The position numbers were made by a program, and so were the translations under genes. The notes below the pieces were generated by a model that saw only the letters and a program-made list of their open reading frames with translations, did no database searches and was not told the origin of the DNA. A stretch of 64,000 nucleotides of DNA from Macrostomum lignano (taxonomy: Eukaryota): assembly GCA_002269645.1 (NCBI GenBank), contig NIVC01000038.1, forward strand, positions 930,001-994,000. Reading direction: 5' to 3'. Positions 19,237 to 46,100 of this stretch are shown here, in pieces (position 1 is the first letter of the stretch; every line of letters starts with the position of its first letter).

Positions 19237-21571
19237 CTATTCTTCAGTGTCCGAGTCGTCATCATTTCTCCTGCACTTCTGCACCAGAATATAGATGAAC
19301 TCAAGCAGCTCAAATGTGCTCACGACGCTGATGCCGAGCCAGAGTCCCAGAGTTCCTCCAATCTGCGGGATATGGAGAAAGCATGCAGTACTCAAATTTT
19401 TGAGCAGATGTCAAAACAGCTGCTGCCCTGTTGCTAGGGAAGAAACTGGGCAGAAGCTCAGTGCGGCCAAAGGAACCGTAGCGGGATGTCAGTGCGGGAT
19501 GTCTGAAATGCGGGAATATTGCAACCGGATGCAGCTCTCACCTCTGACAGGGCCTCAGTCCAGTGGTACTTGTACTTCTCTTCGTAAGCATCCGCCGCAG
19601 GACTCTGCAAGCTGATGCTGACTGCTGCCAGCTCTTTGGCCAGTTCGCTACGAGAAACGCAAGACGTTGCAGATTCAATAATTTTTTTTTTATAATCTTT
19701 ACCCAAGAGTCGGTCAATAAAATTAAATTTTCTTAAAAAATTGAAACGGCAATAGTCGCTCCCACGGGCTAGCAAATACAGCTGAATTTCCTGCCTGGTT
19801 TTGGTGCTGTTCCTAAATATGTGATGCTCTTTGCCATCCTCGGGCAGGAACTCGACTCCATGTCTGACTTGCGGCACCATCAGGTTCTCCCAGATCTCTT
19901 GAATGGCGCTGAACGGGGGCCACCTGCGGCTCTGCTGCCAAGGCCGTTGCTGAGTGAACTGGCACCACATCCGGTGCTGGAACTCCTTCGCCAGCTCCTC
20001 GCTTTGCCTCTGTGCGTGCTCAAACCAGTGATCATGGCAGTCAATTCTCTTGAGCACAGCATCCGATGGGGTGATCCACTCCTGTGGTGGAGCGAAGTAG
20101 CAAAGGTCGCTCGTATTTACCGAGAACGGGAGCAGGTGCGAATAGCAGCCGCAGTTGCTGTGCAGGATGCTCTGCTGTGCCTCGACTACGAAATCGGAGA
20201 CGGACTTTGAGTAGGCCTTGGTGACCACGTTCAGCGAGGCGTTGGAGAAGTGCCTGACATAGTTGATGGTTTCGATTGGAGGCTCGGAGCATCTGCGGCT
20301 CGGCTTCGACATGAGTCGGTTGTGGACCGGCCTGAGTTTGATGGAGGTGCTGGTGGCTGAGGCCACGTCCACGAACTCGGTCTCTGCGGTTTTGCATGGG
20401 TTTGGCATGGGTTGTGAGACTGGTTTGGCATGGGTTGTGCGTGGGCTATGAGACTGGTTTGCCATGGGCTGTGAGACTGGTTTGCCATGGGTTGTGCATG
20501 GGTTGTGAGACTGGTTTGGCATGGGTTGTGAGACTTTCGTGGAATGAAGCAGTTTCAACTAAAACATTAAAACTTATTAAAGGTTTATCTAAATATAAGA
20601 AAAAAGATTACTATATTGACACTAAATTAAGCAACTAATTTATTAAGTTTTGGGCTACTTTTTGCTGCAAAAAACTAATTCGCGGGTAGCGAAGCAAAAT
20701 TACGCACCGCTCATCGGGAAGCTTTTCTCCTCGTGAATGAAGATGCGCAATCCAGCGGACTGCGGCTCGTTGCTCTGCAGCAACCGGTTGACGGCTTTGC
20801 TGCGTAAGAACTTGCGAGTGATGCAGCCGTCGGGCAGTGCTCCATTTGGGTAAATTTCATACAAGTCGGGATACTTCTCGTTGCTATCGGTGAAGAGCAC
20901 CATGTCCAGCTCGGCTCCCCTGCCCCAGGACCGCTGGACGACTGCCGTGGGTCCGGGTGGAACGTGTAGCAGTTCCAGAACCGGCTGGTCTGGACAAGCG
21001 AGAAGTTCTTGTGACTGCACGGCTCGCTGTTGTAGCGGCAGCTCAGCAGCATGGTCTCGTCGAGCTGGGAGATGTTTCTGGTGTCGCCCGATACCCACAT
21101 CACGTCCAGGACCTTCTTGCACACCTTCTCAAGTCGGTTATCATAGCTTTCATCCGATTCTTGCGGGCGCTTCTGGGTGTCCTCCTTGAACCAGTTGTCG
21201 AAGTTGCCCCAGAAGATTTCAAAGTAGTCAAACACCTCAAACTTAAACTCATTCTTAGAGTGGAATTCAAGGAAATTTATAATAGACAGCAGAGATGCAG
21301 AAGCGGGCTTGAAGTTGCAAATTGTGACGTCGGGAAACTGGGCTCGTTCGCTCCTCAGCTTCAGCTGCGACTCAACGGAGCGCTCGGTGAATTTCTGCAC
21401 CAACTTGGCCAAGTGGACGCTGCAGCCGATCAGGGCAGCTACGAACAGAAGCAGCCAGAAGAGCCGTCGAGCTGAGCCTCTGGACAGGAAGATGTGCAGC
21501 AAGCCGTGGGTTCTCGTGATGCCAGCCACCTCCTGGGCGGCACCGGTCACCGTGCGGAGTCGGGCTCGCAT
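19237..21571 (-). CDS. DEG/ENaC-family cation channel; exons 21571-20708 (one frameshift near 20917-20926), 20383-19542, 19362-19237
   Basis: It has the N-terminal THG motif, TM1 (RLFWLLLFVAALIG), FPDVTICN, SCRYNSEPC, CYTF, GLRIFIHE, CGC, RRWP and TM2 LSE/IGGTLGLWLGISVVSTFELLEF. Splice phases are consistent. One added base gives about 610 aa. Confidence 0.9.
20395..20535. repeat. Short minisatellite (gttgtgagactggtttggcatgg) in ENaC intron 1
   Basis: Tandem copies are visible. Confidence 0.85.
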
Positions 21572-24033: not shown

Positions 24034-26206
24034 TTAAGCAGAGACGGTGCTGCGGCTGCTGAGCACGGTGACAATCTGCTCAAGTGGAATGTTGCCATCC
24101 TCGTCAGGTTCGAGCAGCTGGACCAGCTCCTCCACTTCGCTGGGGTCCATTCTGTCGCCCAGACTCACCATGATGTAGCGGAGCTTGTCCACGTGTAGCT
24201 TGCCAGTGTCCTGCTCATCGAATACCTGCGGGTGACGGTTATGGGTGTTAGTTATAGACGTTAGATATGGGTGTTAGATATGGATGTTAGATATGTGTGT
24301 TAGATATGGATGTTAGATATGTGTGTTTATAATGGGTGTTAGATATGTGTGTTAGATATGGCTTTTACATAACAATGTTAGATATGGGTGCTAAATATGT
24401 GTGTTAGATGTAGGTTATGGATATATTCATGTATGTGTTAGATATGGATGTTAAGTATGGGTGTTACATATGAGTGTTAGAATGGGTGCTAGATATGTAT
24501 GTTAGATATGAATTTTAGATATATGGGTGTTAGATTCAAGTGTTAGATATGGGTATTTTATATGAGTGTTATATGTAGGTGTTACATATGGGTGTTATAT
24601 ATAAACGTTAGATTTGTTTTTTAGATACATGTGTGTATGAGTGTTAGATATGGGTTTTGGATATGGGTGTTAGATATGGGTGTTAGATACAGGTGTTAGA
24701 TATGCATGCTAGATATGTGTTGTTAGAAATGCACATATTTGTGTTGATAATATTCTCATAATTTGACTGTTAGACATGGAATGTTAAATTTGTTAATTTA
24801 TTTACCTGTACCTAGGGTTGTACCTAGTTATACTTTCTAATAATCCATAAATCAATAAGCCATCAAGCATTAGTCCCTCTCAGCCTTGTCAATATCTCAA
24901 TTCCCCGCTGTCACAGCAGTGCAAGAGTCCCAATGCAATTAAAAACAGTTGACGGACCAATAATTCCTGGAGTAATAATGGACTTTCCGCACTCACTTCT
25001 TTAACTACATGTATAGTTGATATTGTTATTGGTCCTTCTCTAGCAACCATTAGTTTTATAACTCCGTTCGAGTATCTCAATCAAAACTGACTGAGCAATT
25101 AGGAGTTAATTGAAGCTTAAAAGATAAGCCGGTTTCATTATTCTGATGGCCTCTTGCACGAAATTCGAAATTCAAGTCTTTCCTGCCTCTCAAAGTGAGT
25201 CTTAGAAATTCCAGAGTTACTTGAAGTAGTCCACTGCGGCAAATGATACGAATTATCTAACAGGGAAATCTCCGTGTCTAAGACTCTAAGAGGTATGCTT
25301 CGGTGTCTAACTCATTTTGAATTTCTAACAGGTGAATTGTAACTGCCTAACAGGTGAACTCTGTGAGCGTTTAACAGGTGAAGTCATCCTGAGTGTCTAA
25401 CAGGTGACTCATCCTGAGTGTCTAACAGGTGACTCATCCTGAGTGTCTAACAGGTGACTCATCCTGAGTGTCTAACAGGTGACTCATTCTGAGTGTCTGA
25501 CAGGTGACTCATCCTGAGTGTCTGACAGGTGACTCATCCTGAGTGTCTGACAGGTGACTCATCCTGAGTGTCTAACAGGTGACTATTCTGAGTGTCTAAC
25601 AGGTGACTCATTCTGAGTGTCTAACAAGTGACACATCCGGAGTGTCTAACAGGTGACTCATTCTGAGTGTCTAACAGGTGACTCATTCTGAGTGTCTAAC
25701 AGGTGACTCATTCTGAGTGTCTAACAAGTGACACATCCGGAGTGTCTAACAGGTGACTCATCCTGAGTGTCTAACAGGTGACTCATTCTGAGTGTCTAAC
25801 AAGTGACGCATCCTGAGTGTCTAACAGGTGACTCATTCTGAGTGTCTAACAGGTGACTCATTCTGAGTGTCTAACAGGTGACTCATCCTGAGTGTCTAGC
25901 GCGTCACTACCAGCCGCTCACCTTTAGAGCCTCCCGAATCTGTGTCCCAGACTCTCCTTCGTTCATCTTCTTCATCATGAGGATGGTGAACTCGGCAAAG
26001 TCCAGCTCTCCGTTGCCGTCAACGTCCACCTGCCTGATGAGGCGCTGCACCTCGTCCTCCGAAGGATTCTGGCCCAGCGACCGCATCACGTCGCCGAGCT
26101 CGTTCGCCGAGATGGTGCCGCCGCCGTCGCGGTCGAACAGCAGGAAGGCCTCGCGCAGTTCTGCGATTTCATCTTCGGACAGATCGAATTCGGCCTCCGA
26201 TTTCAT
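24034..26206 (-). CDS. Calmodulin-like four-EF-hand protein, 158 aa; exons 26206-25922, 24225-24034
   Basis: [41 protein letters not shown]...[13 protein letters not shown]...[41 protein letters not shown]. Phase-0 GT..AG intron. Confidence 0.92.
24240..24720. repeat. Degenerate ~14-bp repeat (gttagatatgggt) in the calmodulin-like intron
   Basis: Directly visible. Confidence 0.85.
25370..25898. repeat. 25-bp minisatellite (aacaggtgactcatcctgagtgtct) in the calmodulin-like intron
   Basis: About 20 tandem copies. Confidence 0.95.
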
Positions 26207-26634
26207 GCCTGACTGGGGAAGGTCAATCTCTACAGGTGGATTATAGTTGGAGTCGCTAATCCCCCAGCAACCGGAGGTTATATAACTGACTTACAGAGCC
26301 AATCAGCTTCTGGGCGAGAGAAATAAGGGAAGACAGCGAACAAAGAGGATATGGGTATGGAGTAGGAGGGGGGTGTTGATACAGATGTACTGCCAACTCA
26401 GACTCACGGATCCCAGTTTGCAAACAGACACCACCCACAGGCTTCAGGCCTTGCGGGGCTGCCAGTTCTTTCTCGATCGTGTGGAATTTCTCATGCTCCA
26501 TTCAGCTACTGGTTTCGTGTGTCTCTCATTTCTGTGATGCACTCTGGCAGTCGTCGCCTGAGTTCACCTCTCCCAGATCCTTATTTATCTACTCTCACTC
26601 TGCTCGTGAGGCACGACAGACAGTCTCTCTGTCG

Positions 26635-27200: not shown

Positions 27201-27834
27201 TGTCTACCCTAAAAATTAAGGTGGAAGTCTGGCCGTGCACAGTGCGTGCAGTATCGAAGCAGCATGACAAGTATCAAAAAGTTGCAAAACGGAAGCACAG
27301 GAAACGAGAGTACACACGGGTAGATGAGGTGTCGAAAAGTCGAAGCTTTTAGCAGAACGACTGTTTTATTGTGTCGTTTTTATGATTCTTGGTCCTTCCC
27401 CCTCTTCTCCCAGAATTTGCATCGCAAGCATCCCCACCACTGCGCCAGTGGCTTCATCTGCAGTTTAATATCCCGATTTCATATACTTCAGCTCTCTCCC
27501 CAGCTTTCTTGTTCCTTCCTTCCTCCCATCCCAACCGGGAGATTTGGTTGGGAAAATTTCTGCTAAATGCAGATCCCAGCGCGAGGGGAACAATGAGAGA
27601 ATTGAGGAGGCTTGCAGTTTCGTTGGGTCTGGGGGGGGGGAGAATTCAGAGTTCGCCTCATCAGTCCGATAGGACGCAGGTTGTGACAAATGCTAAGCCT
27701 AGAGCAGACCGCACATAGTTCTCCCGCCTTTAATCTGGCTCGATCGATTGAGTAGACTGACGCGTGACTTTGGAGCATGAATCTTTTATTTAAAGTAAAA
27801 AAATTGCTTAAATATAAAGACTGAGTAGGGTGAG

Positions 27835-28885
27835 TATCAGGTGAGGATTAGGGTGAGGATTAAGTGAAGATTAGGTGAGGATTAAGGTGATGATTAGGTG
27901 AGGATTAGAGTGAGGATTAGGTAAAGATTAGTTGAGGATTAAAGTGAGGATTAGGTGAGGATTAAGTGAGGATTAGGTGAGGATTAAGGTGAGGATTAGG
28001 GTGAGGATTAAGTGAGGATTAGGTGAGGATTAAGGTGAGGATTAGGGTGAGGATTAAGTGAAGATTAGGTGAGGATTAAGGTGATGATTAGGTGAGGATT
28101 AGAGTGAAGATTAGGTAAAGATTAGGTGAGGATTAAAGTGAGGATTAGGTGAGGATTAAGTGAGGATTAGGTGAGGATTAAGGTGAGGATTAGGGTAAGG
28201 ATTAAGTGAGGATTAGGTGAGGATTAGGTGAGGATTAAGGTGAGGATTAGGTGAGGATTAGGTGAGGATTAGGTGAGGATTAAGATGAGGATTAGGTGAG
28301 GATTAGAGTGAGGATTAGGTAAAGATTAGGTGAGGATTAGGTGAGGATTAGGTAAGGATTAAGTGAGGATTAGGTAAAGATTAGGTGAGGATTAGGTGAG
28401 GATTAGGTGAGGATTAAGATGAGGATTAGGTGAGGATTAGAGTGAGGATTAGGTAAAGATTAGGTGAGGATTAAGGTGAGGATTAGGTGAGGATTAGGTG
28501 AGGATTAGGTGAGGATTAAGGTGAGGATTAGGTGAGGATTAGGTGAGGATTAATGTGAGGATTAGGGTAAGGATTAGGTGAGGATTAAGATGAGGATTAG
28601 GTGAGGATTAGAGTGAGGATTAGGTAAAGATTAGGTGAGGATTAGGTGAGGATTAGGTGAGGATTAGAGTGAGGATTAGGTAAAGATTAGGTGAGGATTA
28701 GGTGAGGATTAGGTGAGGATTAAGATGAGGATTAGGTGAGGATTAGAGTGAGGATTAGGTAAAGATTAGGTGAGGATTAGGGTGAGGATTAGGGTGTGGA
28801 TTAGGGTGAGGATTAGGGTGAGGATTAGAGAGGGGATTAGGTGAGGATTAGGGTGAAGATTAGAGAGGGGATTAGGTGAAAACTA
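27835..28885. repeat. 11-12 bp minisatellite (gtgaggattag)
   Basis: About 1 kb tandem array. Confidence 0.95.
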
Positions 28886-29147
28886 GGTGAGCTTTAAATT
28901 GCTGATTGATTTTAATGCTGCCACTCGCACAATCAGCTCAGGACTTGAGTAAAGCTAAAAGCTTAGAGATAGTTCTCCCTCTTTATTAACAGTTTCAAAA
29001 GTTTTGTCTGTGGCACTAATTGAACCCTAATGCGGTTAAAAAGCTGCTGCATAATTTGAGAGGAATGTTAGTTGCTCTGTCAGTCAACAGTTGCTAACCG
29101 CTGTCTCAATTGCTTGTAGGAATCTCAGGTCAGCTCGAAGCGACACC

Positions 29148-32102
29148 ATGGCATCCTCTCATGTAAGCCGGTAGTTCTTTAGCATTAAAACTGTTATAGT
29201 TTCATGCTCATGCTATGACGATTCCCTCATAACCCCGTATCCTCTGCAGCCGAAATCCCTAATGACGGTGCAAGTTGGTCAAGCTGGGATACAAATTGGA
29301 CATGCGGTGTGGGAGCTGTTCTGTCTGGAGCACAACATATCGGCAGATGGCACCCCGAAACTGCACTGCGGCGATCTCGGCAATGTGGAGTCTGTGTTTG
29401 TGCCCACACCGAAGGGGCGCTACTTTCCCAGGAGCCTGTTTGTGGACACAGACCCCGCTTGCGTTGGTGAGATGAGATGGGGTCTCAGGGTGAGAGTAGA
29501 TAGGGTCTGAGGGTGATAATAGTAGATAGGGTCTGAGGGTGAGAGTAGATAGGGTCTGAGGGTGATGATAGTAGATAGGGTCTGAGGGTGAGAGTAGATA
29601 GGGTCTGAGGGTGATGATAGTAGATAGGGTCTGAGGGTGAGAGTAGATAGGGTCTGAGGGTGATGATAGTAGATAGGGTCTGAGGGTGAGAGTAGATAGG
29701 GTCTGAGGATGAGAGTAGATAGGGTCTGAGGGTGAGAGTAGATAGGGTCTGAGGATGAGAGTAGATAGGGTCTGAGGGTGAGAGTAGATCGGGTCTGAGG
29801 GTGAGAGTACAATGGTTGAGTCCCTGGTAAGAGAAATTGGCTAAACGGTTCTCCGTAAATCATGAAGCAGGTAAATCCCAGCCAGGAAGTTCATAGCAAA
29901 CTTTAATCGCAAAAAGTTCACCCGCCCTGAAACCGCCACCAGACGAGATGCGCTCAGGACCCTACAAGCAGCTGTTCAGCTCCCGACAGCTGCTCTCAGA
30001 CCAGGTGGACGCGGCCAGCAACTACACTACTGGTCGCTATGGTTACGCCAAGCGGCTGGTGCCGGACACGCTCGAACGACTGCGCTGGATGACTGAGAAG
30101 GCGGACTCGAAGCCGACGCTCTGTCTGGTGCACAGCGCCTGCGGCGGCACCGGCAGCGGCTTCGCCGTGGCCTGCCTCGCCAGGATGGCCGACGAACTGG
30201 GCATCGAGCCGCAGAACATCATCGATCTGTGCGTTGTGCCCGGCGTCTCCGCCGGCCAGAGCTCCTGCGAGCTGCTCAACACCGCCCTGTACCTGGACGA
30301 GTCGCAGGACCTGACCAGGCAGACCGTCTGCGTCTCCAACTCGGCGATGTTCCGCCTGTGCAACTCGCAGCTGCAGTCGCAGGGGGCGGCCACCTTCGCA
30401 CACGCCAACCGCGCCCTGGCAGCCGCCTTCAGCAACCTCACCGCCACGGAGCGCCTGCCCGGCTCCAGCGTCGGCCTGTCCGGCATCCTGGACAGCCTGC
30501 TGCCGTTCCGTCACCTGCGCTACACCCTGCTGGCCTGCGCTCCTTTCCTCACCACCGAGAACGCCAGGACAGAGCGTCCAACCGCCAAGTCCGCCACCGC
30601 GGCCGTGTTGGAGCTGTCCAGCCAGTTCCTCGACGTTGACCTCCGTCAGGGTCGCCACGCTGCCGGCTTCCTGTTGTACCGCGGCGACGCCAGTCTGGGC
30701 GAGGCGCAGAAACTGGCGGCGGAGCTGACCGCCCGAGGCCGAGTGCAGTTCCAGGACTGGGCGCCTACCGGCTTCCGCACCGGCGTTGTGACGCCTCCGC
30801 CAGTTGCTCCGCCTGGCAGCGGCTTCGCAGACGTCCCAATCTCCGCGACGCTGCTTGCCAGCCACTCTGGCATCTCCGACATCTTCGCCAAGCTGGCCGC
30901 GAGTTCCAGGAAGCTGCAAGACCGCGACATGTTCGTGCACAACTACGAAGGCGCGATTGTGTCTCTGCTGAACAAAACGGTGGAGGGGAGCAACGCCGGG
31001 ATGAATTTAGGGGCAGGCGGACCGGGGACCAACACGGACTCGGACTCGCAGAAACCAACCAGCCTGGACTCGGCCTCGGCCGATAACAACAGCGTGCGAA
31101 TGTGGATGAACCCGCCGGCGGCTCAGGCTGCGCTGGCTTCGGGCGGTGGTCGCGGTGAGCTGCAGAACTACCGGCGCAGGCGACTGACGTCCAGAGAGCC
31201 CGGCAGCCACGCCACCCAGAAGCCGCAGCAGCAGCAGCAAGAACAGCAGCAAGACGAGGAGGAGCCTCAGGTGTCGCGTACCTGCGCACTAAGCGACGTC
31301 TTCGGCGTTCGAGTCCGCCTATCATCGGCCATCGACTACCTGCAGCGTGTGTCGATCAGCTACGCCGCCGACAGTCAAACCGACGCAGGTGACGCCGCCG
31401 ATGTCGATGCTGCCGCAGTTGGCGACGAAAATGACGTCATCGGGGCGACTAACGGCGAGGAGGACGGCAAGGAGGACGAGGAGGAGACGGAGGGCGCCGA
31501 CGAGGAGGATGGAGAGGAGGGCAAGCAGCGAGTGGATAACAAGCTGCACGTGACCATCAATGATGTCGGCGGGATCGGCAGAGATCGGGAAAATGTCGAC
31601 TCCAATCGGTAAGAGGTCGTGGGCACCCCATGGCGCAATGCCTTTCGGCGAAATCGGTCCCGCAACCACCTCTGAGGCCAGATGCATTTACATGTAGCTT
31701 CTTACTCTGATGCAAAAACACAGGTCCGTTAGCGGCCAGTCTGCCCAGTCTGACTCAAAGCAACAACAGCAACAGCAGCAGCAGCAACAAGCGGACGGGA
31801 ACTCAGTCAGCGCAGAAGAGGAGCCGCAGGTTGAACCATCTCAGCAAAGCGAGCAGGCGGATCTCTCAGCCAGCAAAGACCCCAACGATCCTCCGGCGAA
31901 CAACGCCAACCAGCAGGGCGAGTTGCCTGTCCCAAGCAGTCGTTGGTGTCTCCGACGTCGCAGCAAGTCTCGCCGACCAGGCGAAGCCGCCGCCACCGCC
32001 GCCGCTGCCGCCGCCACTGCAGCAGCCGCTGGAAAACACCCCGCAATTGCTGAAGCCGAGAAAATTCTGATGAAGTACCAACGGAGTCTAGGCGGCCAAT
32101 GA
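29148..32102 (+). CDS. Highly divergent alpha-tubulin-like protein, 758 aa; exons 29148-29162, 29250-29466, 29943-31608, 31724-32102
   Basis: VQVGQAGIQIGHAVWELFCLEH, FPRSLFVD, VDEMRSGPYKQLF, DAASNY, HSACGGTGSG, LLYRGD, QFQDWAPTGFR and MFVHNY align in order with alpha-tubulin. Splice phases 0, 1, 2 are consistent. The TAA at 31610 overlaps a GTAAGA donor at 31609. Confidence 0.88.
29475..29805. repeat. Minisatellite (gagagtagatagggtctgagggt) in tubulin intron 2
   Basis: Tandem copies are visible. Confidence 0.9.
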
Positions 32103-34196: not shown

Positions 34197-37100
34197 TCAG
34201 TGCTTGTCCTCTCTGATTGTGTCCAGTTGTCTGGACGAGCCAGGAGCTGTAGGTGGCTGCTGATTGCTCTGCTCGGCAGCCGCATCAGAGGACTTCTCAC
34301 CGTCTGCGGCTGTCGACTCAACTGCGGCTGCTCGTTCGGCTTCTTCTGGAGAGTGGCAAGCAGTAAGTAGTATTGAAAAGTAGTAAAAACGCTAACACCG
34401 GCAGAATGAGGTGTGGGAAATGAGGTCAAGAGCAATTAGGCAGTGACTTTTTTATTTAAACGGTATTTTTAAGCTTACTAATATTTAATATAACATAAAA
34501 TTTGATGACGTTTGTTATTATTAGTTAATTACCAACTTTCCGGAAAATTTAACACTCAGATATTACGGTATAATTAACAGAATTGATATTTAATAAAAAT
34601 TGATATTTTAGTTGCATTATTGACTATATTGACTATTGTTATAATTTCGCAAAGGGTCACTAAAATAACAAATTAAAATATTCATCGAACCTGTCGGTAT
34701 AGTAGTACGTAAACTAGACTAAAATTTTATTTAAGCAAAAATTTTTTTGTTTTGTAAAGTGAAAATTTTGCTGAGTAACTTGATAAAATTATATTAGCTG
34801 GGTAACTGAATTGATAATTATGCATAATTTAAATATCAACTAAATAAGCATTAACTCACCGATATCAGCTTTCTCTTTCCACAGGGCCCGATTCGTCTTC
34901 AGGTGCTCGTTCCAGGGCCTGTGCAGAACAAAGGCTCCTTCGGCTGTGGGTTTTAAATTATCGGAAGGAAAATCTATTGTAGTCAGATAAAACAATTTTT
35001 TGATGCAAAACTTTCAGGTAATAAAACACGTGCTTAAAAGTTTCAAACAACAAATCAATAACTTCTTTAGACCTCTTCACTTGCAACCATTACAACGAAA
35101 AACATAAAGGGCCGTAAATTACTAGTGCAGAGTAAAACAAAAAATACTTCAATACTCCAACGCGTGTGCCAATTAACACTCCTCAGTCGTCTTTTCTTTG
35201 CATTACCTTGCCACTTTCTAAGCGGTTTCGCTGCGTTAGCGGCTAAATTGTGAGGAGAGATGGGCGAGTTTATATAGAAATTTTTATAAACTGATTAAGT
35301 CAATTAACTACAATATTTTTATACAATTTCGGTTGAAATATTAAAAGAGAAATACCTAAATAAGTACGGAATATACACGTAGCTTTCTTTAGTTAAATAG
35401 AGTTAAAGTTCAAGTTAAATTAAGCACAAAATAAGACTTAAGACAGCTTAGAGTAAAAAAAACAGGGCACTTGAGAGGGTAGCTTGAGACGACGAGCAAA
35501 ATTGTGGGAGTGCGATGGCATGGGTAGTTCCACCGACCAATTAGATTCAAGCTAGGGTTAGGGAGTCCGATGGGTAGTTCCACCGACCAATTAGATTCAA
35601 GCTAGGGTTAGGGAGTCCGATGGGTAGTTCCACCGACCAATTAGATTCAAGCTAGGGTTAGGGAGTCCGATGGGTAGTTCCACCGACCAATTAGATTCAA
35701 GCTAGGGTTAGGGAGTCCGATGGGTAGTTCCACCGACCAATTAGATTCAAGCTAGGGTTAGGGAGTCCGATGGGTAGTTCCACCGACCAAATTAGATTCA
35801 AGCTAGGGTTAGGGAGTCCGATGAGTAGTTCCACCGACCAATGAACTTCAAGCTACATGTAGGGTTAGAAACGGACATAAGTAGTTCCATTTTTCAAGCC
35901 ATTAGAATTAGAGCTTGGATAAATTAGATGGTTAGCATTGTCAACAAATTAAATTAACGGGCAAGATTTTTGTTGCATTTATAACACGCTGAATAACTCA
36001 GTCGAATCATCCTCATTACCGGAACTCCACATGCCAACTGAAATCAAGTGGCAGAAAAATCCACATTTGTCACAAGTCACAAAAATGGAAACTATTATGA
36101 ATGGCAGCGTGGATCTCCAATCTTACCTCCGCCCTCATCGACCGGGTTTCGAGTCCCGTGCTGTCTCTGCTGTTCGAATAGTGGCATCAGAATCTTTTCG
36201 AGCATGTCGCCGAGAACTCCAAAACTGGGCTCCATGATGAAGTCGATGAAACCTGAATCGGATTAGTTAACATGCCAGAGTATGGGCGCATGATCGGAGG
36301 GCGTGTTACGTGCCATAGGTAATAAATGTGTATTCCTGAAAACTTACCAACTTGTGACTGTGCCACCATGGTGGTGCTCCGGTCGCACAGCGGGGAGCAC
36401 GGCAGGTCCAGCGCCTTCTCTCGGTCCCCCTGAGTTCATGGCATTGATGAATGAAATGATTATAAGATCATTGATAAATTTTCAAGATTGATGAATCGAT
36501 AAAATTGATGTATTAATAAGATTGATGAAATATTAATGGATTGATAAGATTGGTAAGATTGATATATTGATAAGATTGATGAAATCGATAGATTGATAGA
36601 TTGATAAGATTGATGAAATTGATGGATTAATAAGCTTGATAAAATTAATGGATTGATAAAATTGATAAATTGATAAGGCTGATAATATTAGCAAGATTGA
36701 TAAGTGATACATCGATTAAAATTGCAGCATATAAGACTTTTCGACCGATAAGATAGATTGATTGACAAGAGAATTGGTTAATCAGACGATCACAAACCTG
36801 TCTGAAAAACTCCTCCAGCAGCGACATGGTCCATCTTTGGTGCAGGTCGAACCGCTTTCCGGGATGACTGATGTCGGCGCAGTGCAGCATGAGGGCCAGC
36901 GCCTTCTCCTTGTCGATGCTGACATTGTGTTAGTGAGGGAGGGATATATAGGGAGATTGAGATTCTGCCGCACAATATTCATTCACTCATTTTGATTGAG
37001 CAACATAGATTCAAACAAACTTTCCCTTCTATTTTAATTCACGAAAGTTTACACTACTAACTAGCTAGAAGAGTAGTATAGAGCATGATAGTGGCTATTC

Positions 37101-40100
37101 GTACGGTTAGTCTTTGAAACCAGAAATTCAGATTAAAAACTATTTTTGAATGTTAAAAATATTTTGCAAAACTAGGAAAATTTTGGCGTGAAAAACTATA
37201 ACCTTTAGACTTAAATAATTTCGACAAAAGTTTGTTTTAACCCAACCGTTTTTTAACTAAAGCAATGAAGCTCTGACCACTCAAACGAATAACCGCTATG
37301 AGAAAGCATCTTTCAAAAAAGTTTTTGCGATGTTTTGATAAAACAAAAACTAATTTGCACTTTTATTGCAATTAATTTGATTAAAAATTGAGATTTTATC
37401 ATTGTTTTGCACTAAATACTAATTATTAGTCGAAGTAGTAGTAAATTACATTTCAAGTTGATTAGTACAAAAAAGTACACTCAAAATTCGGATGTAAAAA
37501 TGTAACAAGAAAAAAGTGAAAGAATGAGGCTAGACTAACTTTTCTACTATAATAAAATAGAAAAGACCCAGAATGTGATAGTAGGCCCTCAATAAATTAG
37601 TAGGATTGATCAGGCTGAGAAGAGAAAGAAAATAATTTACAAGAGTGCAACTAATTTACAGGCTATCTATTAGAGTTTTTATTCATTGAAATTCTAAAAT
37701 TTAGTTTACTAATATTTTTTTAAATTAAATGCTTTACTTTGTATAGCGATATAAAAAATCAATTTTTGTTACTTTTGATTTTTAATTTGCAATTCTGTTT
37801 TTTTCAAACGAATTCTAGCTGTTTAACGTACAGTAAATTATAGTGAATTGTAAGTGCACAAACGAAAACAAATTAAAATCGAGCAGCCAATTGATTACTA
37901 ATGATAAGTTGTACAATATTAGTTAGTGCCGTGAGTGTTAATTATGATTTATCTATTATAACAAAGCTATAAAACAATTTTCTCAGCTTGCCCGCAAGGG
38001 AAGGCGGTGAGAACTGTTCTCCTGGGTCTGGACTCATTGCTGCCATTGCCGAAAAACAGCCACTCTTGGTCTGGCGCCCTAAATTTGTTATAACGAAAAA
38101 AACGTAGTAATCCGGAAATTTCATTGGCATGCAAAACCCAATCCACGCAAAATTTAAAAACGTGCAAATCCAATGCATAACCGCCATTAGTTTAAGCAAA
38201 ATCATTTCAGAGCGGTACTTTTAAAAATAAAACTTGCATTCCAAACAAGCTGTTAGCAATTTTTTGGTTTAAATATACGTGTATAATACTGTATATATAT
38301 AGTGTTTATACGTACAAACAAATGTGCTAGAAATGTTCTGTTCATCTAACAGTGAAAAATGGAGTGCATTCGGCTAGCGTATATTGTCAGTCATAGTTAG
38401 TGGTTCCAATTGGAACAGTCCATGCCGTCGACTAAAAATCAAGACTCTCTCGTAAAAACAACTGGTTAAAATGTTATTTTTGTCGATCGATTTAAAACCC
38501 GCGTAATTTTTTTCGGTATAAAATATTTATAAATTCAAATAACTGATTATATAAGCTCACATTATACTTCTTGCCAAAAATGATACAATACGACTTAGGG
38601 GTCAGGAAAGTCACTAGAGAGGTAGATGAGTAACCTGAGAGTCTGATGAGTCACTGGAGGGTCAAATGACTAACAGATGAGTCAGCTGCATTTCAAGGGT
38701 CAGAAAAGTCATTTGAGGATGGGATAAGGCACTTGAATGTTTTGCTCATTATCGCATAAAATAACTAAACTCTCTCCGATATGCGCTCGTACACTCGTTT
38801 CCAGAAAATGCGGATAAAACCGTAACGGAAACATAAAACCATGCATTTAGTCAGCAATAAACAACAAAACAGCTTGGAGCAATCTTATTCAGACCATGTT
38901 GCGTTGCAGTTGAAGCCTGGCGCAGAGTGATCAGCTGGTGATGATTCTGGCTGCTGCTGATGAAGCCTTGAGTATTCAGTAATAATCTGATACTTTACAA
39001 ACTTTACACTATGCACTTTATTATTGATAAAAATATCGCTGAAAATACTATCAACAGTAATCAAGCAGGCTTAATTCAGTGGGAACAATCTAAACGGATA
39101 TCATTCTCATGCCAGAGGAAAAATATCATTTTGAAAATAAACTTAATATCTTAAAAATAAAATATTAGAATAAATTTAATTTACTCACTTTTCCGGCATG
39201 CTGAGCAGCTGTTTCATGTTCTTGATCTGCTGGAAGTGCAGGCTCATGTCAGTGTTCAGCACCATGTCAATGACGAGGGCGCGGAACTCCCTGCGTGCCA
39301 AGAGTGAAGACAAGATTTGTCTGAGATGTTCTGGGATGTTAGACAGAACCCTGATCTGTTAGACAGAACCCTGATCTGTAAGACAGAACCCTGATCTGTT
39401 AGACAGAACCCTGATCTGTTAGACAGAACCCTGATCTGTAAGACAGAACCCTGATCTGTTAGACAGAACCCTGATCTGTAAGACAGAACCCTGATCTGTT
39501 AGACAGAACCCTGATCTGTAAGACAGAACCCTGATCTGTTAGACAGAACCCTGATCTGTAAGACAGAACCCTGATCTGTTAGACAGAACCCTGATCTGTT
39601 AGACAGAACCCTGATCTGTTAGACAGAACCCTGATCTGTAAGACAGAACCCTGATCTGTTAGACAGAACCCTGATCTGTTAGACAGAACCCTGATCTGTT
39701 AGACAGAACCCTGATCTGTAAGACAGAACCCTGATCTGTTAGACAGAACCCTGATCTGTAAGACAGAACCCTGATCTGTTAGACAGAACCCTGATCTGTT
39801 AGACAGAACCCTGATCTGTTAGACAGAACCCTGATCTGTAAGACAGAACCCTGATCTGTTAGACAGAACCCTGATCTGTTAGACAGAACCCTGATCTGTT
39901 AGACAGAACCCTGATCTGTTAGACAGAACCCTGATCTGTTAGACAGAACCCTGATCTGTTAGACAGAACCCTGATCTGTTAGACAGAACCCTGATCTGTT
40001 AGACAGAACAGTATACTGTTAGACAAGATCCCTAATCCGTCAAACTGTAAGTAGATGAAGCTCAAGCCTTCCAAGCAGCCTCTCACTTGTACTCCTCTCT

Positions 40101-43100
40101 AGACAGGCCGCTGATGATGTTGAACTCGTCCAGCTTCATGAGCCTGAAGACGGCGCTGGCGTGGTGATTCTCCAGCACGCCTTTGTCATTGTACAGCAGG
40201 GCGAGCTCTGAGGCGGTGTTCACGTGAAAGTTATTGGTGGTTCCCGTGTGCTCGTAGTCGTGAATGATGGCGGCAAAAATGGTAGCGAAGATCTCCAGGT
40301 CTGTCAGCCAGTTCTGTTGGATCAAAGTGAGTTATTTGGTATAGTTGATGTCAGATTTTCTGTTTACAACGCCTCAATAATATAAACCCCCTATGTTTAT
40401 AGGTTTTTTAGCTCATAAATAAATGTGACAAGCTGGTTATCAAACTGATCACAAGGACAAAAAGTTTTCTGCTAAAGATGTTAAACAATAGGTCAATCTG
40501 AATGATTTCTTTGTCAAATGGATTTAAGACTGCTGTCCTGATGGTTGAACAAATTTTCAAATTTTAACAATCAATTATTGTTGGTATAGACTAACGAACG
40601 AGAATTTGACAAAAGAGATGAAAGGGGATGACAAGAAATCAGAGTAGATGGCTGTAGATGAGAGGAGAGATCAGAAGGGATGAGATGAGATAAGATAAAA
40701 GTAGATGAGAGGAGATGGGGAAGGTGGGGGAGACGAGGGGAGATAAAAGGAGATGAGGGGAGATTAAAATAAGATGAAAGAAACTGAGAGGAAGAGAAGA
40801 GAGGAAGAGATGAGAGAAGAAGACATGAGATGAGTGGAGATGACAGCAGATGACAGGAGATGAGTGGAGATGAGAGGAGATGAGAGGAGATGAGGGGAGA
40901 TGAGAGGAAATGAGAGGAGATGAGAGGAGATGAGGGGAGATGAGAGGAGATGAGAGGAGATGAGGGGAGATGAGAGGAAATGAGAGGAGATGAGAGGAGA
41001 TGAGGGGAGATGAGAGGAGATGAGAGGAGATAAGGGGAGATGACAGGAGATGAGTGGAGATGAGAGGAGATGAGAGGAGATGAGGGGAGATGAGAGGAAA
41101 TGAGAGGAGATGAGAGGAGATGAGGGGAGATGAGAGGAGATGAGGGGAGATGAGTGGAGATGAGAGGAGATGAGAGGAGATGAGGGGAGATGAGAGGAGA
41201 TGAGAGGAGATAAGGGGAGATGAGTGGAGATGAGAGGAGATAAGGGGAGATGAGTGGAGATGAGTGGAGATGAGAGGAGATAAGGGGAGATGAGTGGAGA
41301 TGAGGGGAGATGAGAGGAGATGAGGGGAGATGAGAGGAGATGAGAGGAGATAAGGGGAGATGACAGGAGATGAGTGGAGATGAGAGGAGATGAGAGGAGA
41401 TGAGGGGAGATGAGAGGAAATGAGAGGAGATGAGAGGAGATGAGGGGAGATGAGAGGAGATGAGAGGAAATGAGTGGAGATGAGTGGAGATGAGAGGAGA
41501 TGAGAGGAGATGAGGGGAGATGAGAGGAGATGAGAGGAGATAAGGGGAGATGAGTGGAGATGAGAGGAGATGAGGGGAGATGAGTGGAGATGAGTGGAGA
41601 TGAGAGGAGATAAGGGGAGATGAGTGGAGATGAGGGGAGATGAGAGGAGATGAGGGGAGATGAGAGGAGATGAGAGGAGATAAGGGGAGATGACAGGAGA
41701 TGAGTGGAGATGAGAGGAGATGAGAGGAGATGAGGGGAGATGAGAGGAAATGAGAGGAGATGAGAGGAGATGAGGGGAGATGAGAGGAGATGAGAGGAGA
41801 TAAGGGGAGATGAGTGGAGATGAGAGGAGATGAGAGGAGATGAGGGGAGATGAGAGGAGATGAGAGGAGATAAGGGGAGATGAGTGGAGATGAGAGGAGA
41901 TGAGAGGAGATGAGGGGAGATGAGAGGAGATGAGAGGAGATAAGGGGAGATGAGTGGAGATGAGAGGAGATAAGGGGAGATGAGTGGAGATGAGTGGAGA
42001 TGAAAGGAGATGAGGGGAGATGAGAGGAGATGAGAGGAGATGAGGGGAGATGAGAGGAAATGAGAGGAGATGAGGGGAGATGAGAGGAAATGAGAGGAGA
42101 TGAGAGGAGATGAGGGGAGATGAGTGGAGATGAGAGGAGATAAGGGGAGATGAGTGGAGATGAGAGGAGATAAGGGGAGATGAGTGGAGATGAGTGGAGA
42201 TGAAAGGAGATGAGGGGAGATGAGAGGAGATGACAGGAGATGAGTGGAGATGAGAGGAAATGAGGGGAGATGAGTGGAGATGAGTGGAGATGAGTGGAGA
42301 TGAGAGGAGATGAGTGGAGATGAGTGGAGATGAGAGGAGATGAGTGGAGATGAGAGGAAATGAGGGGAGATGAGTGGAGATGAGTGGAGATGAGTGGAGA
42401 TGAGAGGAGATGAGTGGAGATGAGTGGAGATGAGGGGAGATGAGTGGAGATGAGAGAAGGGAACGCAGAAGATAAAACGCCAGATGAAGAGGAGATCCAA
42501 GAGAAAACTGCAGCCCAGAGAGGACGGCCTTCCCAGGAACGCAGCCCAACCCATCCGCATCAGCGAAGTCGGACATGCAATCCGCCGCTGTTAGCAGCTC
42601 ATCGCAGCTTCTCCAGCCTCCCGCCTCATCTCCGCTAAAATCTGTGGCGGCGCAGCGCAGCGTGAAGCGAAGCTCTATCATCAAAGAGGCTGCGAGCGAA
42701 ATGCAATCTACATGAATTTCTCATCAATCTACCTGACACTTTCTTAAATTGCATTCAGGGTTGCTGGGCTAGCAAGGCCGCTCATTTTTTTGGCGTCAGA
42801 CCTCCCGGCCCGAATAATGAGTTTTCCGAGTTTCGGATTTTTTGGCTATTAGGCTCTTCTCGAGTTTCTGATTAAGTCTGTTGACTCTCGGCTGGAAACT
42901 GAAAATTACAGCGGCTAAGCGTTTCGGTGTCCATTTCGTCAGCTTGCAATTTTCGTAATCTGTCCTTCTTCCAGATTTTCACTCTTCCATATTGTCACTC
43001 TTCCATCCCGTCACTCTTCCATATTGTCACTCTTCCATATTGTCACTCTTCCATCCCGTCACTCTTCCACCTCGTCACTCTTCCATCCCCTCACTCTTCC

Positions 43101-46100
43101 ATCCCGTCACTCTTCTATCCCGTCACTCTTCCATCCCGTCACTCTTCCATCGCGTCACTCTTCCACCCGTCACTCTTCCATCCCGTCACTCTTCCATCCC
43201 GTCACTCTTCCACCTCGTCACTCTTCCATCCCCTCACTCTTCCATCCCGTCACTCTTCTATCCCGTCACTCTTCCATCCCGTCACTCTTCCATCCCGTCA
43301 CTCTTCCACCCGTCACTCTTCCATCCCGTCACTCTTCCATCCCGTCACTCTTCCACCTCGTCACTCTTCCATCCCCTCACTCTTCCATCCCGTCACTCTT
43401 CTATCCCGTCACTCTTCCATCCCGTCACTCTTCCATCCCGTCACTCTTCCATCTCGTCACTCTTCCACCTCGTCACTCTTCCATCCCCTCACTCTTCCAT
43501 CCCGTCACTCTTCTATCCCGTCACTCTTCCATCCCGTCACTCTTCTATCCCGTCACTCTTTCATTCTGTGACTCTCCCATATTATTCCTCAGCCTCAACT
43601 CACCACCAGCTTGGAGGAGCTCATGATGAAGTGGCAGGTCTGGGCCACGTCCGCCCCGTGGACCAGGTTGTGGTACGGGTTGCTAAACCTGCTGTAGCCT
43701 TCCTCGCATTTGGTGAGGAAATTCTCCAACACGTTTGTGTTGATCTGCGGGTTTTATAGATAAAATTGTAGCTTTTAGAGTGTGAAAGTGGGAAAGAATG
43801 ATCTTGAAAGAGTGACAAATTGACCATGAGAGAGTGATCTAGTGGCGGAATGACCATGAGAGAGTGACAAAGAGATGGAATGACCATGAGAGAGTGACAA
43901 AGTGACGGAGTGACCATGAGAGAGTGACAAAGTGACGGAGTGACCATGAGAGAGTGACAAAGTTACGGAGTGATGAGAGAGTGACAAAGTGAAGGAGTGA
44001 CCATGAGAGAGTGACAAAGTGAAGGAGTGACCATGAAAGAGTGACAAAATGAAGGAGTGACCATGAGAGAGTGACAAAGTGAAAGAGTGATCAAGAGAGA
44101 GTGACAAAGTGACGGAGTGACCATGAGAGAGTGACAAAGTGACGGAGTGACCATGAGAGAGTGACAAAGTGACGGAGTGACCATGAGAGAGTGACAAAGA
44201 GACAGAGTGACCATGAGAGAGTGACAAAGTTACGGGGGGGGGACCATGAGAGAGTGACAAAGTTACGGAGTGACCATGAGAGTGTGACAAAGTTACGGAG
44301 TGACCATGAGAGTGTGACAAAGTGACTGAGTGATGGTTAGAAAGTAAAAAGTAATAAATTCAAGGCTATAAAGAAGGAGGATAACTTTCTTCACAGATTT
44401 ATCGAGTCAGCTCACCTTGAACTTGTTAATAAGGTCGTATTTGTGCAGCAACTCGAAACCAACAAACTTAAGAGCATGATTGTCCGAGGCCTCATTGAGC
44501 TCAAAAATATTGAAGCACCAATCGTCCAAACCGGCCTAAAAAAGGATAGCGGATGAAGTAGTGCTAAAAATCATTGTTTTTTTTTTAAAATTGACATGTT
44601 AATGTAGTTAATAATAGACAGCTGTTTTTAGATTGCTGTACCTTCAACAGCACGAGGACATTTTGCGGCACGTTGATGTTGCTTGAGCTTGACAGTCTGC
44701 GGTAGATTCTGTTGAAGATATTGGTAGATTAGGGAACTGTTCGTGTCGACTAGTATAGTATGTGTAGTAGCTAGACTGGTGAAATCTGGACCACAGCGTG
44801 TACGCTTGAAGATAATATTTTATCAAAGCATATTTGAGGGGAATAGGGAGGCAGAGAGAGGGTGAACGAGAGGGAGAGAGATAGGGAGAGAGGGATTGGG
44901 AGATGGGGAGAGACAAAGAGGGAAATGGGGATAAAGGATGGGCAGAGAGGGAGACAGAGATGGGGAGAGAGGGAGACAGAGATGGGGAGAGAGGGAGACA
45001 GAGATGGGGAGAGAGGGAGACAGAGATGGGGAGAGAGGGAGACAGAGATGGGGAGGGAGGGAGACAGAGATGGGGAGAGAGGGAGACAGTCATGGGGAGA
45101 GAGGGAGACAGAGATGGGGAGAGAGGGAGACAGAGATGGGGAGAGAGGGAGACAGAGATGGAGAGAGAGGGAGACAGAGATGGGGAGGGAGGGAGACAGA
45201 GATGGGGAGAGAGGGAGACAGTCATGGGGAGAGAGGGAGACAGAGATGGGGAGAGAGGGAGACAGAGATGGGGAGAGAGGGAAACAGAGATGGGGAGAGA
45301 GGGAGACAGAGATGGGGAGAGAGGGAGACAGAGATGGGGAGAGGGGGAGACAGAGATGAGGAGAGAGGGAGACAGAGATGGGGAGAGAGGGAGACAGAGA
45401 TGAGGAGGGAGGGAGACAGAGATGGGGAGAGAGGGAGACAGAGATGAGGAGGGAGGGAGACAGAGATGAGGAGGGAGGGAGACAGAGATGAGGAGGGAGG
45501 GAGACAGAGATGGGGAGAGAGGGAGACAGAGATGGGGAGAGAGGGAGACAGAGATGGGGAGAGAGGGAGACAGAGATGGGGAGAGGGGGAAACAGAGATG
45601 GAGAGAGAGGGAGAGAGATAGAGGGAGAGACGGGAAAGAGAGAGGGTGAGAAGAAGTGGACTGGGAGGCACCGCAGGCGCACCTCTCCACCATGATGCCG
45701 GCCCTGATGGCATTGGCGACGCTGCGGAACTTGGGCTTTTCCCGGTGTTGCTTGAGCGAAGTCTGAGACCGCGTGAAGGTGCTCGCCAGCCAGTCACGCA
45801 CCTCGTTGGGCACCTCGCCGGAGGGCACTTCGGGCAGTTCGTCCTCTTCGTTGCACAGGCGCCTGCATATTTAGCGATATAAATAATCGATAATTTACTT
45901 CGAAAATTTGAATTACCGCGAAAAATGAGAAAAATTAAACAAAAATTTACAAAAATTATTTACCACTGAGGCAAAAACTACAGATCTAGAATTAATTCGT
46001 TAACGCGCTACTGAGCGCAAGGCAAGTCAACTACCGGTAAGCAAAAATATTTTTGAAATTTTGTTTAAATTTTGTACGTTTTTCAAGTCAAACATTTTAG

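Follow-up and report, generated by a model that had tools for sequence, protein, structure and literature searches.

The window analysed here, a stretch of 64,000 nucleotides from the flatworm Macrostomum lignano (assembly GCA_002269645.1, contig NIVC01000038.1, positions 930,001 to 994,000 of the forward strand), carries on its + strand a four-exon gene, Mlig033756 (29148-32102), whose product of 758 amino acids is an alpha-derived tubulin. The activating pair D251/E254, a defining feature of the alpha-tubulin family, is absent from this product. Mlig033756 is nevertheless a real, transcribed gene under strong purifying selection and not a pseudogene. In canonical tubulin the beta subunit has a complete GTPase site only with E254 of the alpha subunit above it, and replacement of this residue by Ala (E254A) is lethal in yeast (PMC7018511, PMC11893814). 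Human tubulins with E254A, E254N or E254Q do not hydrolyse GTP and polymerise into stable GTP microtubules without catastrophe (PMC7018511, PMC11893814).

Alpha E254 is regarded as a universally conserved catalytic residue, yet here an animal genome keeps E254-less, alpha-derived genes under purifying selection. The E254-less set described below comprises two old Macrostomum paralogues and, in trematodes and tapeworms, a subfamily with a conserved Gln254. With these genes nature offers a test of the use that a cell makes of a non-activating subunit, and of which tubulin surfaces serve which job. As M. lignano is amenable to RNA interference and transgenesis, both questions are open to direct experiment.

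Loss of D251 and E254 in an alpha-derived tubulin

The part of the product that carries the motifs, ERLPGSSVGLSGILDSLLPFRHLRY in translation, was aligned by HMMER to alpha-tubulins of the Protein Data Bank (PDB), by MAFFT in several alignments with 65-70 alpha-tubulins, and in a profile alignment of 416 tubulin domains. All agreed on the register. The D251 position is G255 (codon GGC, 30473-30475) and the E254 position is G258 (codon GGC, 30482-30484), and the original prediction, made from the letters of the window without database searches, had named both glycines and had given exactly these coordinates for the second. The sole indel in the T7/H8 region, a one-residue deletion at alpha L248, lies upstream of both. 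In the AlphaFold2 (AF2) model, H8 comprises residues 256-261 and G258 is in its first turn, like alpha E254. Asp was found at 251 in 64 of the 65 comparison alpha-tubulins and Glu at 254 in 62, so that the Gly/Gly pair is not ordinary variation. When an acidic residue at position 254 was looked for in the alignments and in the AF2 model, there was none. The nearest, D261 (alpha position 257, one helical turn past 254), was considered as a substitute acid and rejected, the paralogue described below having Ser there.

Two other replacements named by the prediction, CGGTGSG for GGGTGSG and VSNSA for VDNEA, are correct by codon position. The first residue of the nucleotide-binding signature is Cys, so that the tubulin pattern [SAG]-G-G-T-G-[SA]-G (PROSITE PS00227) is not matched, and the next six residues are intact. 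The altered motifs are located as follows.

30140..30160, + strand: T4 nucleotide-binding signature, CGGTGSG; C144 (TGC, 30140-30142) replaces alpha G142.
30332..30346, + strand: T6 loop, VSNSA instead of VDNEA; N206 is kept, and D205 and E207 are both Ser.
30455..30508, + strand: T7 loop and helix H8, LPGSSVGLSGILDSLLPF; the D251 and E254 positions are both Gly.

The assignment to alpha-tubulin, likewise part of the prediction, was confirmed by several comparisons. Matches to Pfam PF00091 (Tubulin, 114 bits, cut-off 33) and PF03953 (Tubulin_C, 57 bits, cut-off 26.6) were both above threshold. The top 60 PDB sequence matches found with HMMER were all alpha-tubulin, with E-values of 3e-70 to 6e-65, and the top 50 Foldseek matches of the AF2 model were all alpha chains, with template-modelling (TM) scores of 0.86-0.90 (on target) and a root-mean-square deviation of ~2 Å. 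For the greater part of residues 10-400, the predicted local distance difference test score (pLDDT) of the model was above 90. Around H2 and S9, the alpha-specific motifs VDEMRSGPYKQLF and VQFQDWAPTGFRTG are present, and a neighbour-joining tree placed the protein among alpha-like sequences, separate from beta. We conclude that the product of Mlig033756 is an alpha-derived tubulin and not a gamma, delta or epsilon tubulin.

Membership of another family (gamma, delta, epsilon or zeta) is scarcely credible: the segment VGLSGILDSLLPF seems superficially like the T7/H8 region of gamma-tubulin, which also has Gly at the 254 position, but this gamma-like reading of T7 is ruled out by the ranking of the PDB and Foldseek matches, and the alpha-specific motifs and the tree also oppose it.

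Compared with canonical alpha-tubulins such as PDB 6E88_A, 5MJS_E and 3J8X_A, the window protein has the same fold and Pfam domains, and it shares with them most residues of the GTP pocket, the H2 and S9 motifs and an intron in codon 76. It differs from them in overall sequence (~31% identity), in the substitutions D251G, E254G and G142C, in the rebuilding of T7, H8, H10, the M-loop and H11, in the absence of K40 and of the Glu-Glu-Tyr (EEY) tail, and in the addition of an insert of ~100 amino acids (aa) before H12 and of a ~200-aa extension.

The alpha set has 127 positions with an invariance of 95% or more, and the window protein departs from it at 60 of them. The residues kept in the GTP pocket are G10-Q11-A12-G13, D69, S140, G143-G148, E183, N186, N206 and N228. 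The pocket changes are conservative at E71 (to Asp) and Y224 (to Phe); in addition N101 is Ser and the T5 loop is rebuilt. Judged by its sequence, the nucleotide pocket is largely intact, and GTP binding is predicted. Contacts on the nucleotide (intradimer) side are changed in the T5 loop and at P222, R402 (R402D) and W407 (W407N).

Identity to the alpha consensus was highest in S1-T1-H1 (0.63), S8 (0.64) and the H10-S9 loop (0.62), and lowest in H10 (0.06), H11 (0.10), H8-S7 (0.14) and T5 (0.14), followed by H8 (0.22), T7 (0.25) and the M-loop (0.29). The low-scoring segments are 0.66-0.95 conserved among ordinary alpha-tubulins. Between the two Macrostomum paralogues mostly the same segments were lowest (0.10-0.29; H8-S7 0.43, T5 0.36), whereas identity was 0.63-0.70 in T1, T2, T4 and H7 and 0.77 in the H10-S9 loop. 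The three amino-acid differences between duplicated copies of the gene fall in the M-loop (T283A, N285S) and in H10 (A345S).

The C-terminal part of the protein departs from alpha-tubulin in its architecture as well, with three elements that could be located in the model.

30986..31291, + strand: disordered insert of ~100 aa, residues 426-527, between H11' (FVHNYEG) and the H12-like helix; AF2 pLDDT below 50 over residues 426-531.
31292..31369, + strand: H12-like helix, residues 528-553, VRVRLSSAIDYLQRVSISY; helical in the AF2 model, pLDDT up to 82.
32040-32090, + strand: C-terminal helix, residues 739-755; AF2 pLDDT ~74.

The H12-like helix, displaced by the insert, is non-acidic (isoelectric point, pI, 8.3), and in sequence it corresponds to the paralogue's H12 and, less closely, to canonical H12. 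It is followed by a tail of ~200 aa, in which an acidic Gln-rich stretch (pI 4.3), a basic Cys/Trp patch, a poly-Ala run and the C-terminal helix succeed one another. A Pfam scan of the 332-aa tail returned no domain. Position 40 is Cys, and the protein ends in KYQRSLGGQ, with no terminal EEY. An acidic C-terminal tail ending in Glu-Glu-Tyr, the K40 acetylation site and an acidic H12 are therefore all three absent.

Selection and flatworm relatives

Between the copy in the window and a second genomic copy, g1 (L001), the tubulin domain has accumulated 14 synonymous and three non-synonymous substitutions (dS 0.045, dN 0.003), giving a dN/dS ratio (omega) of 0.07 (binomial p = 1.6e-6). In the tail, omega between the window copy and the duplicated copies is 0.25-0.30. 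The selection estimates, here and below, are based on 17 and 18 substitutions. The frame of 758 codons is intact in three genomic copies. The GenBank annotation of the assembly was derived from a genome-guided StringTie/TACO assembly of RNA-seq data together with a de novo transcriptome (PMC5730564), and transcription of Mlig033756 is thereby implied. The gene was not mentioned in the literature searched, including the supplements of PMC5816591, PMC5730564, PMC12896417 and PMC7336406, in which no tissue or stage data were found. Neutral evolution of an unexpressed gene, which the original prediction had named as grounds for abandoning its claim, is contradicted by the omega value and by the RNA-seq-derived gene models.

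A decaying duplicate or an annotation artefact is accordingly effectively excluded. The strong divergence (~31% identity to alpha-tubulins) and the lack of an orthologue outside Macrostomum in an exhaustive protein library would fit decay, but the intact frame in three copies, the low omega, the RNA-seq-based models, the confident AF2 fold and the constraint on a 45%-identical paralogue all contradict it.

This paralogue, M. lignano Mlig018576 (P0122, P0276, P0278), was the only relative closer than ordinary alpha-tubulins in an exhaustive HMMER scan of 1.84 billion representative proteins, in which the query was the translation of exon 3 and not the spliced sequence. It scored 314 bits at 45% identity, as compared with at most 186 bits for single-copy alpha-tubulins. 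Word-indexed homologue searches did not return M. lignano proteins, which the exhaustive scan alone recovered, and a search with a family-specific profile of two sequences found nothing. Mlig018576 resembles the window protein in its layout (tubulin body, insert, docked H12, disordered tail and C-terminal helix), in the loss of both activating residues, in the codon-76 intron and in the constraint on its tubulin domain (omega 0.12, p = 2.5e-5). It differs in having Asn/Asn rather than Gly/Gly at 251/254 within an ungapped T7/H8 region, FPGTMMCNIANICSNVLPF, an intact GGGTGSG, VTNSA rather than VSNSA in the T6 loop, a shorter Gly/Ser-rich insert (~24 aa) at the same place, an H12 helix (489-508) modelled at pLDDT 89-94 as compared with up to 82, and an extra intron at alpha codon 263.

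The tails of the two paralogues can be aligned in two places (31950-32099 of the window), and the rest of them is unalignable. The basic Cys/Trp patch reads RWCLRRRSKSRR in the window protein and RRCRNWTRRAKR in P0276 and P0278; the C-terminal helix reads AEKILMKYQRSL and VKRMVQKYNEMF, respectively, with the motif K(I/M)(L/V)xKY(Q/N) common to the window protein and the paralogue isoform P0278. The patch and the helix are candidate interaction motifs or a candidate nuclear-localisation-like signal. In the tail of Mlig018576 itself (L002 vs L008), which seems free to evolve, six non-synonymous substitutions and one synonymous substitution gave an omega of ~2, which was not significant.

A phase-1 intron in alpha codon 76 is common to both Macrostomum genes and to a Hymenolepis alpha-like gene. 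Its presence in both paralogues indicates that they arose by gene duplication and not by retroposition. Intron positions were also considered as a marker of subfamily and rejected, since the only shared one, codon 76, is the old alpha-tubulin intron and uninformative in this respect.

Other divergent alpha-like proteins have lost E254 as well. The most notable case is a trematode and tapeworm (neodermatan) subfamily that carries the T7/H8 motif GP(L/V)TASLxQLQTNLVPFPRL(H/R)YLQ, and thus S251 and Q254. Its members include Opisthorchis felineus CRM22_002247 and proteins of Calicophoron, Fasciolopsis, Sparganum, Echinococcus, Schistocephalus and Hymenolepis (P0282, P0290, P0291, P0294, P0232, P0372, P0375, P0380; loci L005, L006), of which the Hymenolepis member keeps D251. 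All named proteins in the sample without both acids are from flatworms. Further divergent alpha-like proteins are carried by Paragonimus, Calicophoron and Protopolystoma.

The neodermatan subfamily resembles the Macrostomum proteins in having lost E254 (to a conserved Gln) and, mostly, D251 (to Ser), and in sharing T70, P116 (trematodes only) and R338-G339, the last of which is restricted among the 416 domains to these two groups. It is unlike the window protein in being much less diverged (45-48% identity to canonical alpha), in keeping the H8 sequence QTNLVPFPRL and a normal H12, and in having no large insert. The T7/H8 motif of the subfamily is not found in the window protein, whose corresponding sequence is PGSSVGLSGILDSLLPFRHLRYTL and shares only the surrounding P, F and Y. 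A neighbour-joining tree grouped the Macrostomum proteins with the subfamily at a bootstrap of only 26%, with long-branch attraction likely, and the window protein scored 243 bits against a profile of the subfamily as compared with 282 bits against a canonical alpha profile.

Possible roles of a non-activating tubulin

The beta GTPase site depends on E254 as its catalytic residue, and a protein without it cannot act as activator. From this established mechanism we infer that the window protein would be unable to stimulate GTP hydrolysis on any partner, and the behaviour of the engineered E254 mutants, which are hydrolysis-dead, makes the loss of the activating function a sound deduction. In this respect the original prediction, in which the protein could create hydrolysis-resistant sites if incorporated, is partly supported. 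It is not supported in so far as it assumes an otherwise normal alpha-tubulin, given the number of invariant positions that are changed. On sequence grounds, entry of the protein into the microtubule lattice is doubtful. Its conservation pattern makes it most likely that it is no longer a regular repeating lattice subunit, because the T7/H8/H10 face, the M-loop and the H11/H12 surface are rebuilt and poorly conserved between the paralogues, and H12 is pushed out.

The reading that we prefer, tentatively and at somewhat less than even odds, is that of a GTP-bound, hydrolysis-inert tubulin module that works at microtubule ends or off the lattice and uses its tail as an adaptor. Such a module would use its conserved nucleotide side to pair with beta-tubulin or another, beta-like protein. 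Its place would be either off the lattice or at microtubule ends, where it would act as a terminator on the side facing the minus end; the adaptor would consist of the long, acidic and Gln-rich tail together with the basic patch and the conserved C-terminal helix. A terminal or off-lattice role is favoured by the combination of a constrained pocket and core with an activating face, lateral loop and outer surface that have been relaxed or remodelled and that differ between the paralogues.

Several points weigh against this preference. Engineered E254 mutants polymerise well, so that loss of E254 alone permits entry into the lattice (PMC7018511, PMC11893814). The H10-S9 loop, an element of the longitudinal contact, is well kept, both relative to the alpha consensus and between the paralogues. 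The nucleotide-side contacts in the T5 loop and at P222, R402 and W407 are changed as well, which makes pairing with ordinary beta-tubulin itself uncertain. Finally, the surfaces may have diverged fast because they co-evolved with a specialised partner, and not because contacts were lost.

The mechanism put forward in the original prediction, which we consider unlikely, is that of a specialised alpha isotype that would form a dimer with beta-tubulin and co-polymerise throughout the lattice, where its interdimer contacts would stay GTP-bound and give hyperstable microtubules, for example in the cortical arrays of flatworm sperm or epidermis. It is in keeping with the human E254A, E254N and E254Q tubulins, which polymerise and never undergo catastrophe; the N254 of the paralogue and the Q254 of the parasitic-flatworm subfamily are exactly two of these laboratory substitutions. 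Strong purifying selection on the tubulin domain, the kept H10-S9 loop and GTP pocket, and an H12 that in the AF2 models seems still docked on the body are also as expected of an isotype. The engineered alphas are, however, like the window protein in the missing catalytic glutamate only, and the functional likeness is limited to this one respect: they are one residue away from wild type and polymerise normally, whereas in the window protein, with G254, ~70% of positions are different, and most polymer contacts are among them. Helices H8, H10 and H11 and the M-loop are nearly all replaced and not conserved between the paralogues, 60 of the 127 alpha-invariant positions are changed, a loop of ~100 aa and a tail of ~200 aa would stand on what would be the outer surface next to a non-acidic H12, and K40 and the C-terminal EEY are absent.

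It is also unlikely that the protein has departed entirely from the microtubule system to become a GTP-binding scaffold of tubulin fold that would not bind beta-tubulin, would possibly form a homo-dimer or a dimer of the paralogues, and would act through the motifs of its tail. Changes at alpha-invariant contacts on both longitudinal faces (T5, W407N and R402D on one; T7, H8 and H10 on the other) and the basic Cys/Trp patch and C-terminal helix shared by the paralogues argue for such a departure. The alpha-specific motifs retained around the nucleotide argue against it, as does an omega of 0.07 over the whole domain, which fits a conserved protein partner; in the tail, moreover, Pfam detected no known domain.

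A broader proposal, improbable on present comparisons, would unite the two Macrostomum genes and the Ser251/Gln254 subfamily in one ancient flatworm class of GTPase-dead alpha-tubulins that build or terminate permanently stable arrays, for example in the sperm cortex, the tegument or the epidermis. If true, the proteins of this class would be natural equivalents of the 'GTP-cap mimic' tubulins engineered as E254Q and E254N.

Gene structure and genomic setting

The exon borders of Mlig033756 were set by inspection of splice sites. The spliced product of this model is identical, residue for residue, to the database protein P0121. NCBI holds three copies of the gene, BOX15_Mlig033756 g1, g2 and g3 (P0271-P0273), and databases label it a hypothetical tubulin-domain protein. 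The exons of locus L004 (g3) are identical to those of the window copy. The parts of the gene are as follows (a slash marks the exon border).

29148..29162, + strand: exon 1/4 of the splice model (MASSH), with donor GTAAGC.
29250..29466, + strand: exon 2/4 of the splice model, residues 6-78 (S1, T1 loop, H1, T2).
29277-29288, + strand: T1 loop, GQAG, within exon 2/4.
29467..29942, + strand: intron, mainly a 23/49-bp minisatellite (Tandem Repeats Finder: 29466-29809).
29943..31608, + strand: exon 3/4, residues 78-633 (Pfam Tubulin 1.1e-32, Tubulin_C 2.3e-15).
31609..31723, + strand: intron of 115 bp, phase 2, donor CG/GTAAGA, acceptor ACACAG/G.
31724..32102, + strand: exon 4/4 of the splice model, with the acidic Gln-rich tail, the basic patch RWCLRRRSKSRR, the poly-Ala run, the C-terminal helix and the stop.
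32100-32102, + strand: stop codon of the splice model.

The donor of exon 2/4, G/GTGAGA, is in phase 1 and splits codon D78, which corresponds to alpha-tubulin codon 76. Exon 3/4 encodes everything from the remainder of the GTPase domain to the first part of the tail, including Tubulin_C, the disordered insert and the H12-like helix. The interval 29948-30520, to which the original prediction had been assigned, falls inside this exon, but 29948 is not the start of a feature: it is an internal Met codon (M80) that opens the mechanical open reading frame (ORF) 29948-31612, and the exon begins at 29943, after the phase-1 intron.

The units of the minisatellite in that intron each open with a copy of the 5' splice site, GGTGAGA, so that many cryptic donors lie downstream of the real one. 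The intron measures 476, 563 and 753 bp in the three genomic copies (including L001 and L003). On the 5' side of the gene, an 11-bp microsatellite, GGTGAGGATTA, present in ~93 copies at 27829-28891, stops ~260 bp before the start codon, and much of the presumed promoter region is therefore taken up by the array.

The window as a whole is repeat-rich eukaryotic DNA of ~42% GC, with a peak of 64.5% in the 30-32 kb block. GC at third codon positions (GC3) is 0.86 in the tubulin-like exon (29945-31000), as compared with 0.88 in a PDE1 exon, 0.70 in an ENaC exon and 0.49 in a caspase exon of the same window, in a genome of ~42% GC. The high GC3 of the tubulin-like exon could reflect expression-linked codon bias or biased gene conversion.

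Upstream of the array, 25907-26206 (- strand) holds an exon with an EF-hand pair from a calmodulin- or troponin-C-like gene (Pfam EF-hand_7, 6.5e-16). An 835-aa UniRef model of the tubulin-like protein, P0275, was rejected as an annotation artefact, its N-terminal extension being an antisense translation of this EF-hand exon (ORF 25878-26246, + strand). The other neighbours on that side are an exon of a DEG/ENaC (ASC) channel at 19458-21571 (- strand) and a caspase p20 exon at about 6430-6729 (+ strand). On the other side lies a PDE1-type phosphodiesterase gene (34200-45828, - strand) whose introns are packed with long tandem arrays, and in each of the three copies this phosphodiesterase gene lies downstream of the tubulin-like one.

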